Assembly (NCBI GenBank): GCA_002269645.1
Contig: NIVC01003803.1
Coordinates: 1-64,000 of the forward strand
Direction: 5' to 3'
DNA: 64,000 nucleotides
DNA from: Macrostomum lignano
Taxonomy: Eukaryota
This document shows positions 13,201-61,466 of the stretch, piece after piece. How positions within the stretch are numbered: the stretch's first letter is position 1; each line of letters begins with the position of its first letter. Below the pieces are notes generated by a model. That model did no database searches. It worked only from the letters and a program-made list of their open reading frames with translations, and was not told the origin of the DNA. Position numbers and translations under genes: made by a program.

Positions 13201-15556
13201 GATCTTTAGTTAAAAAATTGGGATCTTAAGTTCGGAATTGGGATCTTTAGTTCGAAATCGGGATCTTAAGTTCAAAGTTAGGATATTTTGATCAAAATGA
13301 GGATCTGGGAGACTGGCCCAGCAACTGACACTCTGGGAGGCTGGCCTAGCAATTGAGGATATGGGAGGCTGGCCTATTGGGATATTGGGATCTTGGCTAT
13401 GGAATTTACAGTTAATTCGAAATAAAGTACAACTACACGTATAAAACTTGAACTTTCTCAACCTTAACCAACAAAATTCAATGCACTATGCTGATATTAG
13501 CATTATAAATGTGAAACAGCTGTACATCATTGCTTCACTCACCAAATAACGCCATCAAAGACGTTGCGGATCATCAGGTGAGACGAGGTGATTAAAAACA
13601 GCAGAGTGACGTGAGTCCAGCCGAACTATGGCACAAAAAATTTCCGGGTTTTTTCAAGTTCAGTTTTTATTGTTTGGTGTGTGTAAAACAAAAACAAAGT
13701 ATCCTCACCAGAGTGAACTGCTTCAAGTAGTGCTTCTTGACTAGACTGACAACGAAACCCACGATACCGCCGCAGTAGAGAGAGAATGATATCAGGCGGT
13801 GGTAGGTCAGCAGCGGTTCCAGAAATTGCTGCAAAAAAGAACGGAGTTGCAAAAGTTATCGTGGATGCCTACTTATAGTAGATAGGATACACGCTTGGGT
13901 TTACCTTAGTTTAAGTGATTTTCAAAATAACTTTAGAGTTCAGTTAGAAATCTAAAAAGGGCGTCCCAGCAACTGAAGATCTGTGAGGCTGACCCAGCAA
14001 CTGAGCATCTGGGAGGCTGGCCCAGCAACTGAGCATCTGGGAGGCTGGCCCAGCAACTGACACTCTGGGAGGCTGGACCAGCAACTGAGGATCTGGGAGG
14101 CTGGCCTAGCAACTGAGGATCTGAGAGGCTGACCCAGCAACTGAGGATCTGGGAGGCTGGCCCAGCAACTGAGGAGCTGGGAGGCTGGCCTAGCAACTGA
14201 GGATTTGGGAGGCTGGTCCAGCAACTGACACTCTGGGAGGCTGGCCCAGCAACTGACACTCTGGGAAGCTGGTCCAGCAACTGACACTCTGGGAGGCTGG
14301 CCCAGCAACTGACACTCTGGGAGGCTGGACCAGCAACTGAGGATCTGGGAGGCCGGCCAGCAACTGAGGATCTGGGAGGCTGGCCTAGCAACTGAGGATC
14401 TGGGAGGCTGGCCCAGCAACTGAGGATCTGTGAGGCTGACCCAGCAACTGAGGATCTGGGAGGCTGACCCAGCAACTGAGGATCTGGGAGGCTGGCACAG
14501 CAACTGAGGATCTGGGAGGCTGACCCAGCAACTGAAGATCTGTGAGGCTGACCCAGCAACTGAGGATCTGGGAGGCTGGCATAGCAACTGAGGATCTGGG
14601 AGGCTGACCCAGCAACTGAGGATCTGGGAGGCTGGCCCAGCAACTGAGGAGCTGGGAGGCTGACCCAGCAACTGAGGATCTGGGAGGCTGGCCTAGCAAC
14701 TGAGGATCTGGGAGGCTGGTCCAGCAACTGACACTCTGGGAGGCTGGTCCAGCAACTGACACTCTGGGAGACTGGCCCAGCAACTGACACTCTGGGTGGC
14801 TGGCCCAGCAGCAACTGAGGATCTGGAATTGTGGCTGCCTGCTCTAGACAACCGCAGAACTCACCTTTCGGTGTAGCAGAATCCTAAACTGGTCGATCAT
14901 GCTCTCGCCGAAGAAAAAATAGTTTGAAGCAAACAGGAAGAACCAGCTCAGTACTCGAAACCAGGGCAAGTCGTGGCTCCGATAAATGGCGTGTCCAATG
15001 CCGATGATCTCCTTGAAGCAGAGCATCTGCAGCAGCAGAATCTGCAGGAGCAGTTAAGAATATGCATACACTTATATGTAGCATTTTCATAAATACTACT
15101 AAACTGCATATAAATTGATTCTTGACTATGGACTGCATAAAAGGTTTTGAATTTTAATTATTTTGTCTGATGATTTTAAGGCGAGAAATAATACAAAGTC
15201 TAATTTGTCTTTAAAATTGTCTTTTTAAAGTAAACGGCTTGAGTAACTATCTGTGCTAATAGATAAAGAAATGCCTCGGCAGCTAAATAGTGTAAAAAAT
15301 TGATAAACAAATTTACCAATCCAACAATGGCCAAGGGACCAAGATAAATGATCAAACTGAACGAACTGATCATAACGAAGCTCATAATGGTTCGGATGAC
15401 CCAGTTTTGCCACCGAGGCGACAGTGGGGCCAGCAATCGCTGAAGTATATTGCTGCTTTCTTCCGGCGTCGATTGTGTTGCCGCTGGGTTGCCAGGTGCA
15501 TTAGAAGAAGGCGGCCTGCCATTTGCTTTCAAGTTTGAGGCTGATTTGTCAGACAT
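10233..15556 (-). CDS. CDS: Phosphatidate cytidylyltransferase (CDP-diacylglycerol synthase), 7 exons, 423 aa
   Basis: Exons 15556-15317, 15041-14865, 13828-13709, 13625-13543, 12984-12687, 11498-11266, 10353-10233. All introns GT-AG with compatible phases. Motifs [68 protein letters not shown]. Confidence 0.95.
10380..10950. repeat. 30-bp minisatellite (gattaggaaatggcgtcagatRaagctgag), about 19 copies, CDS intron 6
   Basis: Direct periodicity; explains ORFs 10335-10910 and 10380-10955. Confidence 0.95.
11582..12130. repeat. About 31-bp minisatellite (cagggactgaggctgggcagtctcttgactt), CDS intron 5
   Basis: Direct periodicity of 31 (11582 to 11613). Confidence 0.95.
12385..12650. repeat. (CTAT)n microsatellite, CDS intron 5
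   Basis: Direct observation. Confidence 0.97.
13085..13390. repeat. Degenerate ~20-bp repeat (attgggatctttagttcgaa) followed by about 3 units of the 28-bp intron-2 repeat, CDS intron 4
   Basis: Direct observation. Confidence 0.8.
13965..14825. repeat. 28-bp minisatellite (gggaggctggcccagcaactgaggatct), about 30 copies, CDS intron 2
   Basis: Direct periodicity; explains ORFs 13933-14814, 13952-14671 and 14385-14783. Confidence 0.95.
15230..15290 (+). other. 28S rRNA helix-69-region-like motif, copy 1 (CDS intron 1)
   Basis: gtaaacggcttgagtaactat-[18 nt]-aaatgcctcggcagctaaatag versus 28S GGGTAAACGGCGGGAGTAACTAT-[GACTCTCTTAAGGTAGCC]-AAATGCCTCGTCATCTAATTAG (recalled). Confidence 0.75.
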
Positions 15557-15768
15557 TTTGGTGTGTCTACATGAATTTCAATTTTATTTTTTAAAACATG
15601 ATATGTAACTATTAATTGTAAGTCTTCCAGCTGGAATTCTTTGATTAATCATATCATATGCATTAGTAACTTCATTATAAACTATAGTCTAATGCAGGTT
15701 CATATACCATGCCTGCCGAGGTTTGCCCATATTGCTTTTTTTCTGTAGCACATTTAGCCACATGGCAG

Positions 15769-15970
15769 TAGGCGCCACGGAACAGGGGGGGGGGGGGGGG
15801 GGGGCAGCTGCCCCCCTGACATTGAGTTGGGGGGGCATTGCCCCCCTTCAAATACCGTTCAACAGCATAATTTTGCTCAAATTTTTGGTCATTGTCCAAG
15901 ACAGGGTCTGGGCTTGAGTTTCGGAAACTTGGTCCTGCCCCCCTGGCAAAAACTTGTTCTGCGGCGCCTG
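15769..15970. mobile_element. hAT-type MITE
   Basis: TIRs taggcgccacggaacagg / cttgttctgcggcgcctg; perfect 8-bp TSD catggcag (15761-15768, 15971-15978). Confidence 0.85.
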
Positions 15971-59460: not shown

Positions 59461-59668
59461 ATTGAACAATTAAACTAGTCAGAAAGTTGCTCATTGTCTA
59501 TGGCCGAACCTATCTCTGTCCTCACTTACAGCGGCCCTGACTTTTGGAGCCTGACATCACCCCACCGCCTGGAAACTCAACTAACTAACAGATTAACAAA
59601 ACCAGCAGGCGCACAAATTGAAACAGCGCGAACTCATTGCAATAGACTTGACAAATAGCAAAACTCAC

Positions 59669-61466
59669 TCAGCAATTAAGCAAATTCTGATTGGCACGAT
59701 CAGTTTCGGCTTCAACAAAATCGTCAATTAAAGATGGCCAAGCCTCGTTATGATCGTAAGCTGATAAGTCGCTTCCGCAGGTGTCAATAAAGGTCAAAAA
59801 CATGTTCCAGGTGTCTCTGCTGACGCCTTTGACGCCCGAGGCACCAGATTGCAGCCAGGTTAGCCAGGCGCCTAAGAGAGGCGGTACGCCCGACGGTCGG
59901 GCCTCGAATACAAGCGCCCACAGGTCCGTGGCCATGGGCAGCTGAAGGGTGCGTTGGCCGCTCTCCAAGCCAAAATCGAAGGCCCAACGGTAGAGATCCT
60001 TGAAGGCGACGTCTACTGAAGGTGAAAGAAAGACTTGATGAGCTCAGTGCTATGAACCTTTGTTTGTGGGATTCTAATATATTGGCTTTGATGTGCCACT
60101 TTAATCAATTTGCTTGGATGTGCCTCTTTAAATTTGCTTTGATGTGCCGCTTTAATCTACTGGCTTTGATATGCCGCTTTTATAAATTTGCTTTGATGTG
60201 CCGCTTTAATCTACTGGCTTTGATATGCCGCTTTTATAAATTTGCTTTGATGTGCCGCTTTAATCAATTGGCTTTGGTGTGCCGCTTTTATCTACTGGCT
60301 TTGGTGTGCCGCTTTTATCTACTGGCTTTGGTGTGCCGCTTTTATCTACTGGCTTTGTTGTGCCGCTTTTATCTACTGGCTTTGATGTGCCGCTTTCATC
60401 TACTGGCTTTGGTGTGCCGCTTTTATCTACTGGCTTTGGTGTGCCGCTTTTATCTACTGGCTTTGGTGTGCCGCTTTTATCTACTGGCTTTGTTGTGCCG
60501 CTTTTATCTACTGGCTTTGATGTGCCGCTTTCATCTACTGGCTTTGATGTGCCGCTTTTATCTACTGGCTTTGATGTGCCGCTTTAATCCACTGGCTTAG
60601 ATGTGCCGCATATTACACACGGTAACCATAGCAACATAACATGGCTTCACCCGGCAACCATAGCAACAAGCATCAATCCAATTCACTCACTGTCCTTGAC
60701 GTCCAACATATCGCCGGACATCCGGCCGCCAGCGCGGCCACCTGTCATGGCGTCCAGCCGGGCGTCAAGCGCCGCGCGCAGCCCATCAGCGGTTGGCGCC
60801 TCTGCCTGCCGCAGAGCAGCGCAACCGCGTCTCAACTCGGCCTCAGTGAAGGCGCACATTTCGCGGGCCCGGCACAGCCAGGCTAGCAGTAGAACGCGAA
60901 TATCGACGGGATCGAGGCCGAGGTCTCGGCAGAGATGCGCCACGCCGCCGGCGCCAATTCTTAAAGGCGGCGTCGATGCGCCAGCGCTGGCGCCATTATC
61001 GTCGGTTGGGTCGACCTGTAGATATTATTGAATAGATATTATTATACAGTTATTAATAAACTGAAAATATTTAGGTGGCGAGGCATTTTAGGTACTAAAA
61101 AGAGGTATAGTTACTCTAGCCGTCTACCTACGCTGTTAATTAGGTGACGAGGCATTTTCATTAGGAAAGAGAGGTAGAGGTACTCCGGCTGTTTACCCAA
61201 CTACTTGCCTCGAAAGCATAGCTAGCAAAGAATCGATCGAATTCCGTAGTTGCTGCTACAAGCGAAGACGAAGCTGACCGATCGTCACCGCCAACAATAT
61301 AGGCTTCGCCAGCCTGCAGGCGACTGGTCTTTGCTGATCCATCCGATGCTAAAGCAGAGTTTGGCACTGGCAATGGCGGCCTACGCTTGCGCTTGCCCGA
61401 CTGCTGCTGCGACTTTGGCATCATGTCGGGATTGGCGGCAGCTTTGAGTGACAGGCAGCTGCCCAT
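59669..61466 (-). CDS. DCUN1D3: DCN1-like NEDD8 co-E3 ligase (DCUN1D3/SCCRO3-like), 3 exons, about 309 aa
   Basis: Exons 61466-61209 (GC donor; alternative GT donor at 61197), 61015-60691, 60015-59669. N-terminal MGSC (myristoylation-type). PONY/DCUN1 motifs LCRDLGLDP.DIRVLLLAW..MC.FT, FKDLYRWAFDFG, GVSRDTWNMFL, EAWPSLIDDFVE. Confidence 0.92.
60065..60605. repeat. 27-bp minisatellite (tttgRtgtgccgcttttatctactggc), DCN1-like intron 2
   Basis: Direct periodicity; explains ORFs 60022-60600 and 60279-60587. Confidence 0.95.
61071..61198 (-). other. 28S rRNA helix-69-region-like motif, copies 4 and 5 in tandem (69-bp spacing), DCN1-like intron 1
   Basis: Minus strand: gggtaaacagccggagtacctct-[18 nt]-aaatgcctcgtcacctaatta (61198-61137) and ggtagacggctagagtaactat-[18 nt]-aaatgcctcgccacctaa (61128-61071). 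Confidence 0.8.

Follow-up and report, generated by a model that had tools for sequence, protein, structure and literature searches.

Short 28S rDNA fragments clustered on a Macrostomum lignano contig carry lesions centred on the R2 cut site

Introduction

Why should a short ribosomal sequence that recurs among ordinary genes look conserved at both ends and scrambled in the middle? The question is raised by positions 1–64,000 of contig NIVC01003803.1 of the flatworm Macrostomum lignano (assembly GCA_002269645.1), a 64,000-nt stretch that we refer to as the window. A preliminary description of this DNA had reported five copies of a motif with two constant arms and a variable core, resembling the segment of the 28S ribosomal RNA (rRNA) gene at which R2 elements insert and the endonuclease I-PpoI cuts, and had offered three candidate explanations: a new family of short 28S-derived elements, cut-and-repair scars of an endonuclease specific for ribosomal DNA (rDNA), or a selected bipartite binding or decoy site. 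We found no earlier description of this arm/core pattern in the literature. Throughout, positions within a unit are numbered from the R2 insertion site (TTAAGG/TAGCC, the slash marking the site), the left arm running from −36 to −14, the core from −13 to +5 and the right arm from +6 to +28. Our analysis leads to the view that the units are best explained as non-functional 28S pseudogene fragments residing in unique DNA, and that the damage to them lies at the R2 cut site.

Results

Six units with common ends and a lesion at the cut site

Direct reading and pattern searches recovered all five of the copies described previously (c1–c5; Table 1). A left-arm pattern, with up to three mismatches allowed, matched the window five times where 0.01 matches were expected, and a right-arm pattern matched it four times (0.09 expected). 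A profile built from the five copies then detected a sixth, decayed copy (c6), giving six 28S-derived units within 57 kb of the window. Each unit of approximately 64 bp corresponds to 28S rDNA from −36 to +28, with near-identical ends in all copies; the arms are, as had been proposed, the 28S sequences that flank the R2 and I-PpoI site. The dinucleotide TT noted before directly upstream of three copies precedes c2, c3 and c5, and c6 as well.

The cores of c1, c3, c4 and c5 are 18, 17, 18 and 18 nt long, respectively, and differ from one another in sequence, just as the preliminary description had it. The further claim that core length is held constant did not survive, the core being about 9 nt long in c2, about 19–21 nt in c6 and 5 nt shorter in a homeologous copy of c5.

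In all six copies the lesion is centred on the R2/I-PpoI cut site. In c1, c3, c4 and c5 a block is randomised from −13 to +5. In c2 the stretch from −9 to +8 is replaced by about 6 nt, a net deletion of 11 nt that follows a native GACT, and in c6 a 2-nt insertion in TTAA (giving TTATTAA) accompanies the loss of TAG at +1 to +3.

Table 1 Coordinates of the 28S-derived units and of the intron that holds two of them
Feature	Positions	Strand	Description
c1	15228-15291	+	left arm 15228-15250; scrambled core 15251-15268 (CTGTGCTAATAGATAAAG); right arm 15269-15291
c2	37943-37995	+	left arm and GACT (37943-37969) identical to 28S; right arm diverged
c3	51980-52043	+	left arm 51980-52002; core 52003-52019 (17 nt); right arm 52020-52042
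c4	61066-61129	-	left arm 61129-61107; core 61106-61089; right arm 61088-61066
c5	61135-61198	-	left arm 61198-61176; core 61175-61158; right arm 61157-61135
c6	4207-4269	-	uniform decay, ~26% in arms; core near-native
DCN1-like intron 1	61016-61208	-	GC-AG, 193 nt; host of c5 and c4, both sense

The lesions disrupt the cleavage motif of the R2 target

For the silkmoth element R2Bm, the target comprises an upstream motif, RUM (A-31WWWGCNNNA-22, within a RUM region from −34 to −22), and a cleavage motif, RASIN (T-6TNANNT+1) (PMC10499050); the upstream motif is the one that the preliminary description had, correctly, pointed to. The RUM positions A-31, G-27, C-26 and A-22 are kept in c1, c2, c3, c5 and c6, and c4 departs with a G at −31, under a silkmoth rule that may not be the flatworm's. 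Judged by the same silkmoth rule and by a hand count, none of the six copies has RASIN at its native distance from RUM: the departures are A at −6 and −5 (c1), T at −3 and C at +1 (c3), A at +1 (c4), and C at −3 with A at +1 (c5), the stretch is deleted from c2, and in c6 the spacing is increased by 2 and TAG is lost. DNase footprints of R2 N-terminal domains have been mapped to −37 to −25, −21 to −15, −2 to +6, +8 to +15 and +17 to +20 (PMC11204384), and the arms coincide with the first two and the last two of these. Variation within the left arm had been thought to fall mostly in the NNN of RUM. Two of the variable positions, −25 and −24, are indeed N positions of the motif, but −31, −28, −18 and −15 vary too.

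Compared with the native R2 target in 28S rDNA, the units retain RUM in the left arm and the downstream footprint in the right arm, in the same order and orientation and at roughly native spacing. They differ from it in that the RASIN centre (−6 to +1) is destroyed in every window copy, in that every copy has its arms free of any R2 or other insert between them, and in that the sites are single-copy in introns or intergenic DNA outside the rDNA array; their flanks are genes, with no further 28S sequence nearby. The scrambled block also spans almost exactly the 15-bp I-PpoI site, CTCTCTTAAGGTAGC, but the site is retained in no window copy, and no match to it with three or fewer mismatches lies inside any of them. 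We know of no I-PpoI-like endonuclease in flatworms.

Arms and cores diverged unequally at first, with no significant difference since

Scored on c1, c3, c4 and c5 with 23-nt arms, differences from 28S amount to 26 of 184 arm positions (14%) and 39 of 77 core positions (51%; Fisher p = 2e-9). Random 18-mers drawn from the window differ from the 28S core at 57% of positions, and the observed cores lie near that level. The concentration of change in the core that had been described is thus real, but nothing indicates that it is being maintained. Between the tandem copies c4 and c5, 11 of 46 arm positions and 6 of 18 core positions differ (p = 0.53, a comparison of low power), and the left arms by themselves differ at 7 of 23. 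The contigs NIVC01001082.1 (L002) and NIVC01001072.1 (L003) are homeologous with this one, and between homeologs the differences within the DCN1-like intron 1 number 5 of 92 in the arms, 5 of 36 in the cores and 5 of 65 in the remaining intron; the arms do not differ significantly from the other intron positions taken together (10 of 101; p = 0.29, again with low power). The arms show no current constraint in these two comparisons, and the earlier supposition that selection holds them is accordingly not borne out at this power. Judged by these alignments, the arm/core contrast is older than the duplication that gave c4 and c5 and has not been maintained since.

The core of c1 is as different from those of c3, c4 and c5 as random sequence would be, though the arms share derived states, which indicates that the cores were scrambled early and independently in each lineage. 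Nor do the cores come from divergent rRNA, since 52 natural large-subunit (LSU) rRNA genes from metagenomes show equal conservation of core and arms, and none of them has lost the core while keeping the arms. These natural genes do vary at −28 to −23. A scan of metagenomes for a variable-core family brought up nothing but genuine LSU rRNA genes, whose cores are native.

Probably at least two insertions, old and local

A 10-bp direct repeat, identical at 9 of 10 positions, abuts both ends of c2 (ACAACTTTGG at 37935-37944 and ACTACTTTGG at 37996-38005). From its sequence and position this repeat is a probable target-site duplication, which would make c2 a discrete insertion and would mean that the upstream TT, at c2 at least, stems from the target site. 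Examination of the flanks of the window copies revealed no convincing direct repeat at any copy other than c2. The earlier proposal of a search for shared flanks or target-site duplications thus yielded a duplication at this one copy and no shared flanks at all.

Some copies have derived states in common: T at −25 in c1, c3 and c4, C at +19 in c4 and c5, and A at +24 in c1 and c4. c4 and c5 form a tandem pair with a 69-nt period. The native left arm of c2 and its own target-site duplication, set beside the derived states shared elsewhere, point to at least two insertion events of a segment with the same boundaries, plus one tandem duplication. A seventh copy in tandem with c6 found no support on inspection.

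Both homeologous contigs carry c5 and c4 at the same place, and NIVC01001072.1 carries c3 at the same place as well. These copies are therefore old, predating the homeolog divergence of 2–5%. The units are also local. As a background sample we used 196 kb from nine other loci of M. lignano, reached through the members of one retrotransposon-protein cluster, and scanned them with the profile and with a 222-nt 28S query. These loci hold no copies, where about 18 would be expected at the density of the window (Poisson P ~1e-8), and this argues for a local cluster and against a uniformly dispersed family; a genome-wide family is not supported by this sample. One of the loci, L064, has at 16190-16211 a lone left-arm-like string, CGGCAAGAGTAACT, with no right arm (profile E = 0.9), which is probably a chance match.

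Candidate identities

Comparison of 150–500 nt of flank by blastn and Smith–Waterman alignment found similarity only within the unit. The flanks are not shared between copies, so the unit is self-contained and does not belong to any larger repeat. 28S homology extending past the arms was not significant against a random-segment null, with marginal values downstream of c1 and c3 (p = 0.026 each, in 12 tests). There is no coding frame in the unit.

An RNA gene was rejected, since Rfam gave no match, whether at the gathering threshold or with E values up to 10, and no transfer RNA was found; so were a microRNA precursor, a mirtron and a small nucleolar RNA (snoRNA), since fold z-scores against shuffled sequence range from −0.9 to +1.4 and Rfam again gives no match. 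A functional LSU rRNA gene is excluded in the same way, only about 64 nt being 28S-like and the core being lost. As to short mobile repeats (miniature inverted-repeat transposable elements, MITEs, or short interspersed elements), the units lack inverted terminal repeats and a tail and share no flanks, a target-site duplication occurs at c2 only, and the 196-kb sample is empty. They are not introners: c1 has the antisense orientation, a larger intron encloses both c4 and c5, c2 and c6 lie outside known introns, and splicing out c4 or c5 individually would leave in-frame stop codons.

Host genes and other features of the window

Four copies lie in introns of three genes and three of these are close to splice sites, as reported before. 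The pair c4/c5 occupies about two thirds of intron 1 of a DCN1-like gene (protein P0001; 59669-61466, minus strand), which was found by matching concatenated exons, and c5 begins 10 nt past the GC 5′ splice site of that intron. The GC donor (61207-61208, minus strand; GAG/GCAAGT) follows the annotated P0001. Intron 1 of a CDP-diacylglycerol synthase gene, on the minus strand, contains c1 in antisense orientation, some 22 nt from the 5′ splice site. The end of c3 provides, in the sense orientation, the 3′ splice site (AG, 52042-52043) of an intron in a gene for a 705-aa protein. Much of this proximity to splice sites is forced, because units of 65–135 bp occupy introns of about 190–290 bp. c2 is located some 610 nt upstream of a tesmin/LIN54-like reading frame, where an intron location cannot be demonstrated, and no recognised gene lies near c6.

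Some further observations concern these surroundings. c1 and c5 each start about 265 nt downstream of the host ATG, in the first intron and in opposite orientations relative to the gene (15228-15556 and 61135-61466). A CCAAT-like box, TGATTGGCC, is found near c2, around position 38040. Within 52044-52083, a 12-nt insert containing the 3′ splice site is followed by the exon downstream of c3, which reads GTGACGC...CGAGA; the segment 52056-52083 aligns with 28S from +29 to +53 at about 78% identity (flank test p = 0.026, uncorrected). On this alignment, the rDNA fragment that gave c3 may also have contributed part of the exon. In the CDP-diacylglycerol synthase gene, exon 1 (15317-15556, minus strand) is clear from its similarity to human CDS1, yet no protein in the database searched has a word in common with it, and the gene is probably unannotated or mis-annotated in the assembly.

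Elsewhere in the window, minisatellite arrays occupy 13933-14814, 29187-30444, 31169-32233, 36190-36531, 51267-51560, 57154-57621 and 60022-60600. They yield long spurious reading frames on both strands, several are within introns of the host genes, and their lengths differ between homeologs. Fragments of a long-terminal-repeat (LTR) retrotransposon pol gene, with an integrase zinc-binding domain and a reverse transcriptase, are present at 6709-8112 on the minus strand; a fuller pol copy (L001 1051-2946) follows on this contig just past the end of the window, and the homeologous contigs lack it. An AT-rich hairpin at 8825-9258, an inverted repeat of about 430 nt with a weak, sub-threshold match to a plant microRNA family, is probably a MITE-like foldback element.

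Discussion

How did fragments with near-native ends come to lose their centre? We favour, with a probability of roughly 0.4, the reading that the units are 28S fragments at ectopic sites which lost their cleavable centre through R2-type cutting and misrepair and have drifted neutrally ever since. Of the three candidates put forward originally, scars of this kind give the best fit, every lesion, those of c2 and c6 included, being centred on the cut site. R2 elements are, moreover, reported from Platyhelminthes, in a paper whose accessible text does not name M. lignano (PMC13188248). Short 28S fragments of about −36 to +28 would have been inserted into unique DNA more than once, the duplication at c2 suggesting a staggered break or target-primed insertion, and one copy would later have been duplicated in tandem to give c5 and c4. 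The native segment would constitute a complete R2 target, with the upstream binding site in the left arm, a core that is melted and cleaved, and the downstream footprint in the right arm. Each ectopic copy may then have been cut and mis-repaired, or only uncleavable alleles may have survived inside genes; the outcome would be the randomised block of 17–18 nt in c1, c3 and c4/c5, the deletion with filler in c2 and the small insertions and deletions in c6. With cleavage no longer possible, neutral drift would have affected the entire unit, and thus its arms as well. On this account the arms seem conserved because they were native at the start, and the cores seem variable because they were scrambled early and independently.

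Several observations weigh against R2-type cutting and misrepair. No R2 element or M. lignano rDNA was retrieved, and the endonuclease is therefore not shown to exist in the species. The three independent lesions put 17–18 nt in place of 18 nt, where simple end-joining scars should vary in length, and the blocks are fully randomised, yet one or two changes would be enough for immunity. A signature of templated insertion, that is, of copying from nearby sequence, is not significant in the cores, the lowest value being that of c3 alone (p = 0.04, in four tests). The T at −25 that we count as a derived state could be the native M. lignano 28S base. In the homeologs the arms have changed about half as fast as the remaining sequence, with most of their changes near the edges, and this comparison of low power leaves room for weak constraint. 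Finally, the clustering of six copies in 57 kb does not follow from this reading.

Dispersed rDNA pseudogene fragments, like NUMT-like (nuclear mitochondrial DNA) or templated-sequence insertions at chromosome breaks, are a known class. The window copies resemble them in being short pieces of an abundant RNA or DNA in unique DNA, with one target-site duplication, neutral decay and no function, but differ in their recurring boundaries (6 of 6), their clustering within 57 kb and the damage to one internal block. R2 elements offer a second comparison. Some R2 lineages carry 22–24-bp upstream or downstream copies of 28S, some of them with substitutions, and the R2 ribozyme cleaves up to 36 nt upstream of the junction, planarian R2 being reported to do so at −28 (PMC3774820). 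The −36 limit coincides with the left boundary of our units. Unlike such 28S leaders, however, the units have no R2 body, ribozyme or 3′ untranslated region between or beside the arms, and the planarian element reportedly cleaves at −28, not at −36.

This comparison bears on a first alternative, which we consider unlikely: that the lesion arrived with the fragment, because the source rDNA had already been damaged by R2 (truncated stubs, junction deletions) or because the centre was garbled by template switching at insertion, and that the copies have been debris from then on. Common boundaries and the target-site duplication at c2 imply insertion of a defined molecule, other animals have 22–24-bp 28S duplications and deletions at their R2 5′ junctions (PMC3774820), and drift since the origin has been neutral, all of which would suit such an arrival. 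Against it, c1, c3 and c4 share derived arm states while their cores are unrelated, so that scrambling should have followed their divergence unless the source population was diverse, and the cores have no common 3′ portion of the kind that a stub of the R2 3′ end would give.

Comparably doubtful, in our estimation, is a history of neutral rDNA debris whose core changed faster for a cause unrelated to any endonuclease, such as slippage in CT-rich sequence, mutations that clustered by chance or the ascertainment of copies through their arms. The decay of c6 is uniform, the 5-nt loss in the c5 homeolog falls in a CCTCT repeat, there is no signal of constraint, and the copies were initially recognised by their arms, each of which agrees with this history. 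However, a contrast of 14% and 51% (p = 2e-9) seen in three independent lineages goes beyond ascertainment, the core contains no CpG, and the lesions of c2 and c6 are likewise centred on the cut site.

Selection on a bipartite DNA site is less credible still. Here the arms would be kept for an R2-type protein with a zinc-finger (ZnF)/Myb N-terminus, or for a host factor, with the spacer left free, and the unit would act as a decoy, a tether or a regulatory site near gene 5′ ends. Such a role would account for arms that coincide with the R2 footprints and RUM, for the most variable left-arm positions, −25 and −24, being RUM N positions, for the occurrence of both orientations, for the placement of c1 and c5 near the host ATG and of c2 near a promoter, and for homeolog arm changes that fall mostly at arm edges. 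Yet it gains no support from the constraint tests: neither the homeologs (p = 0.29) nor the c4/c5 duplicates, whose left arms have diverged as described above, show significant constraint, c6 has decayed, and spacer length varies. A decoy faces the added difficulty that a few sites cannot rival hundreds of rDNA units. A more specific form of the selected site, with arms that persist because the ZnF/Myb domains of R2, or a host protein derived from them, dock on a bipartite, cleavage-dead site, is by our reckoning a shade less probable again.

A role at the RNA level in the host introns, through mimicry of 28S segments that pair with box C/D snoRNAs or rRNA-derived small RNAs, or through splice signals (a donor-like GTAAAC; a CTAAT branch point followed by an AG acceptor), is highly improbable. 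In its favour, c3, c4 and c5 are sense, the right arm of c3 supplies the 3′ splice region, units start with GTARAC and end with YAG, and the 2′-O-methylated positions A2256, A2280, A2281 and G2288 of yeast 25S rRNA presumably lie within the arms, but c1 is antisense, c2 and c6 are outside known introns, folding is no better than that of shuffled sequence, Rfam gives no match and there is no signal of constraint.

Whether they are scars or plain debris, the units are a small local curiosity and add no new genome-wide element. If they are debris and nothing else, they serve as a caution that a pattern of conserved arms and a variable core can come from an early local lesion and neutral drift, without selection on the arms. 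If the arms were instead a docking site, the units would be the first natural case of a disarmed R2 target with a host function, in tethering, regulation or as a decoy, near the 5′ ends of ordinary genes. And if cutting and misrepair by an R2-type endonuclease did produce the lesions, the window would hold a natural record of the off-target activity of an rDNA-specific retrotransposon endonuclease on ectopic targets and would show which part of the target confers immunity when it is lost, a point relevant both to the biology of R2 and to R2-based gene insertion.

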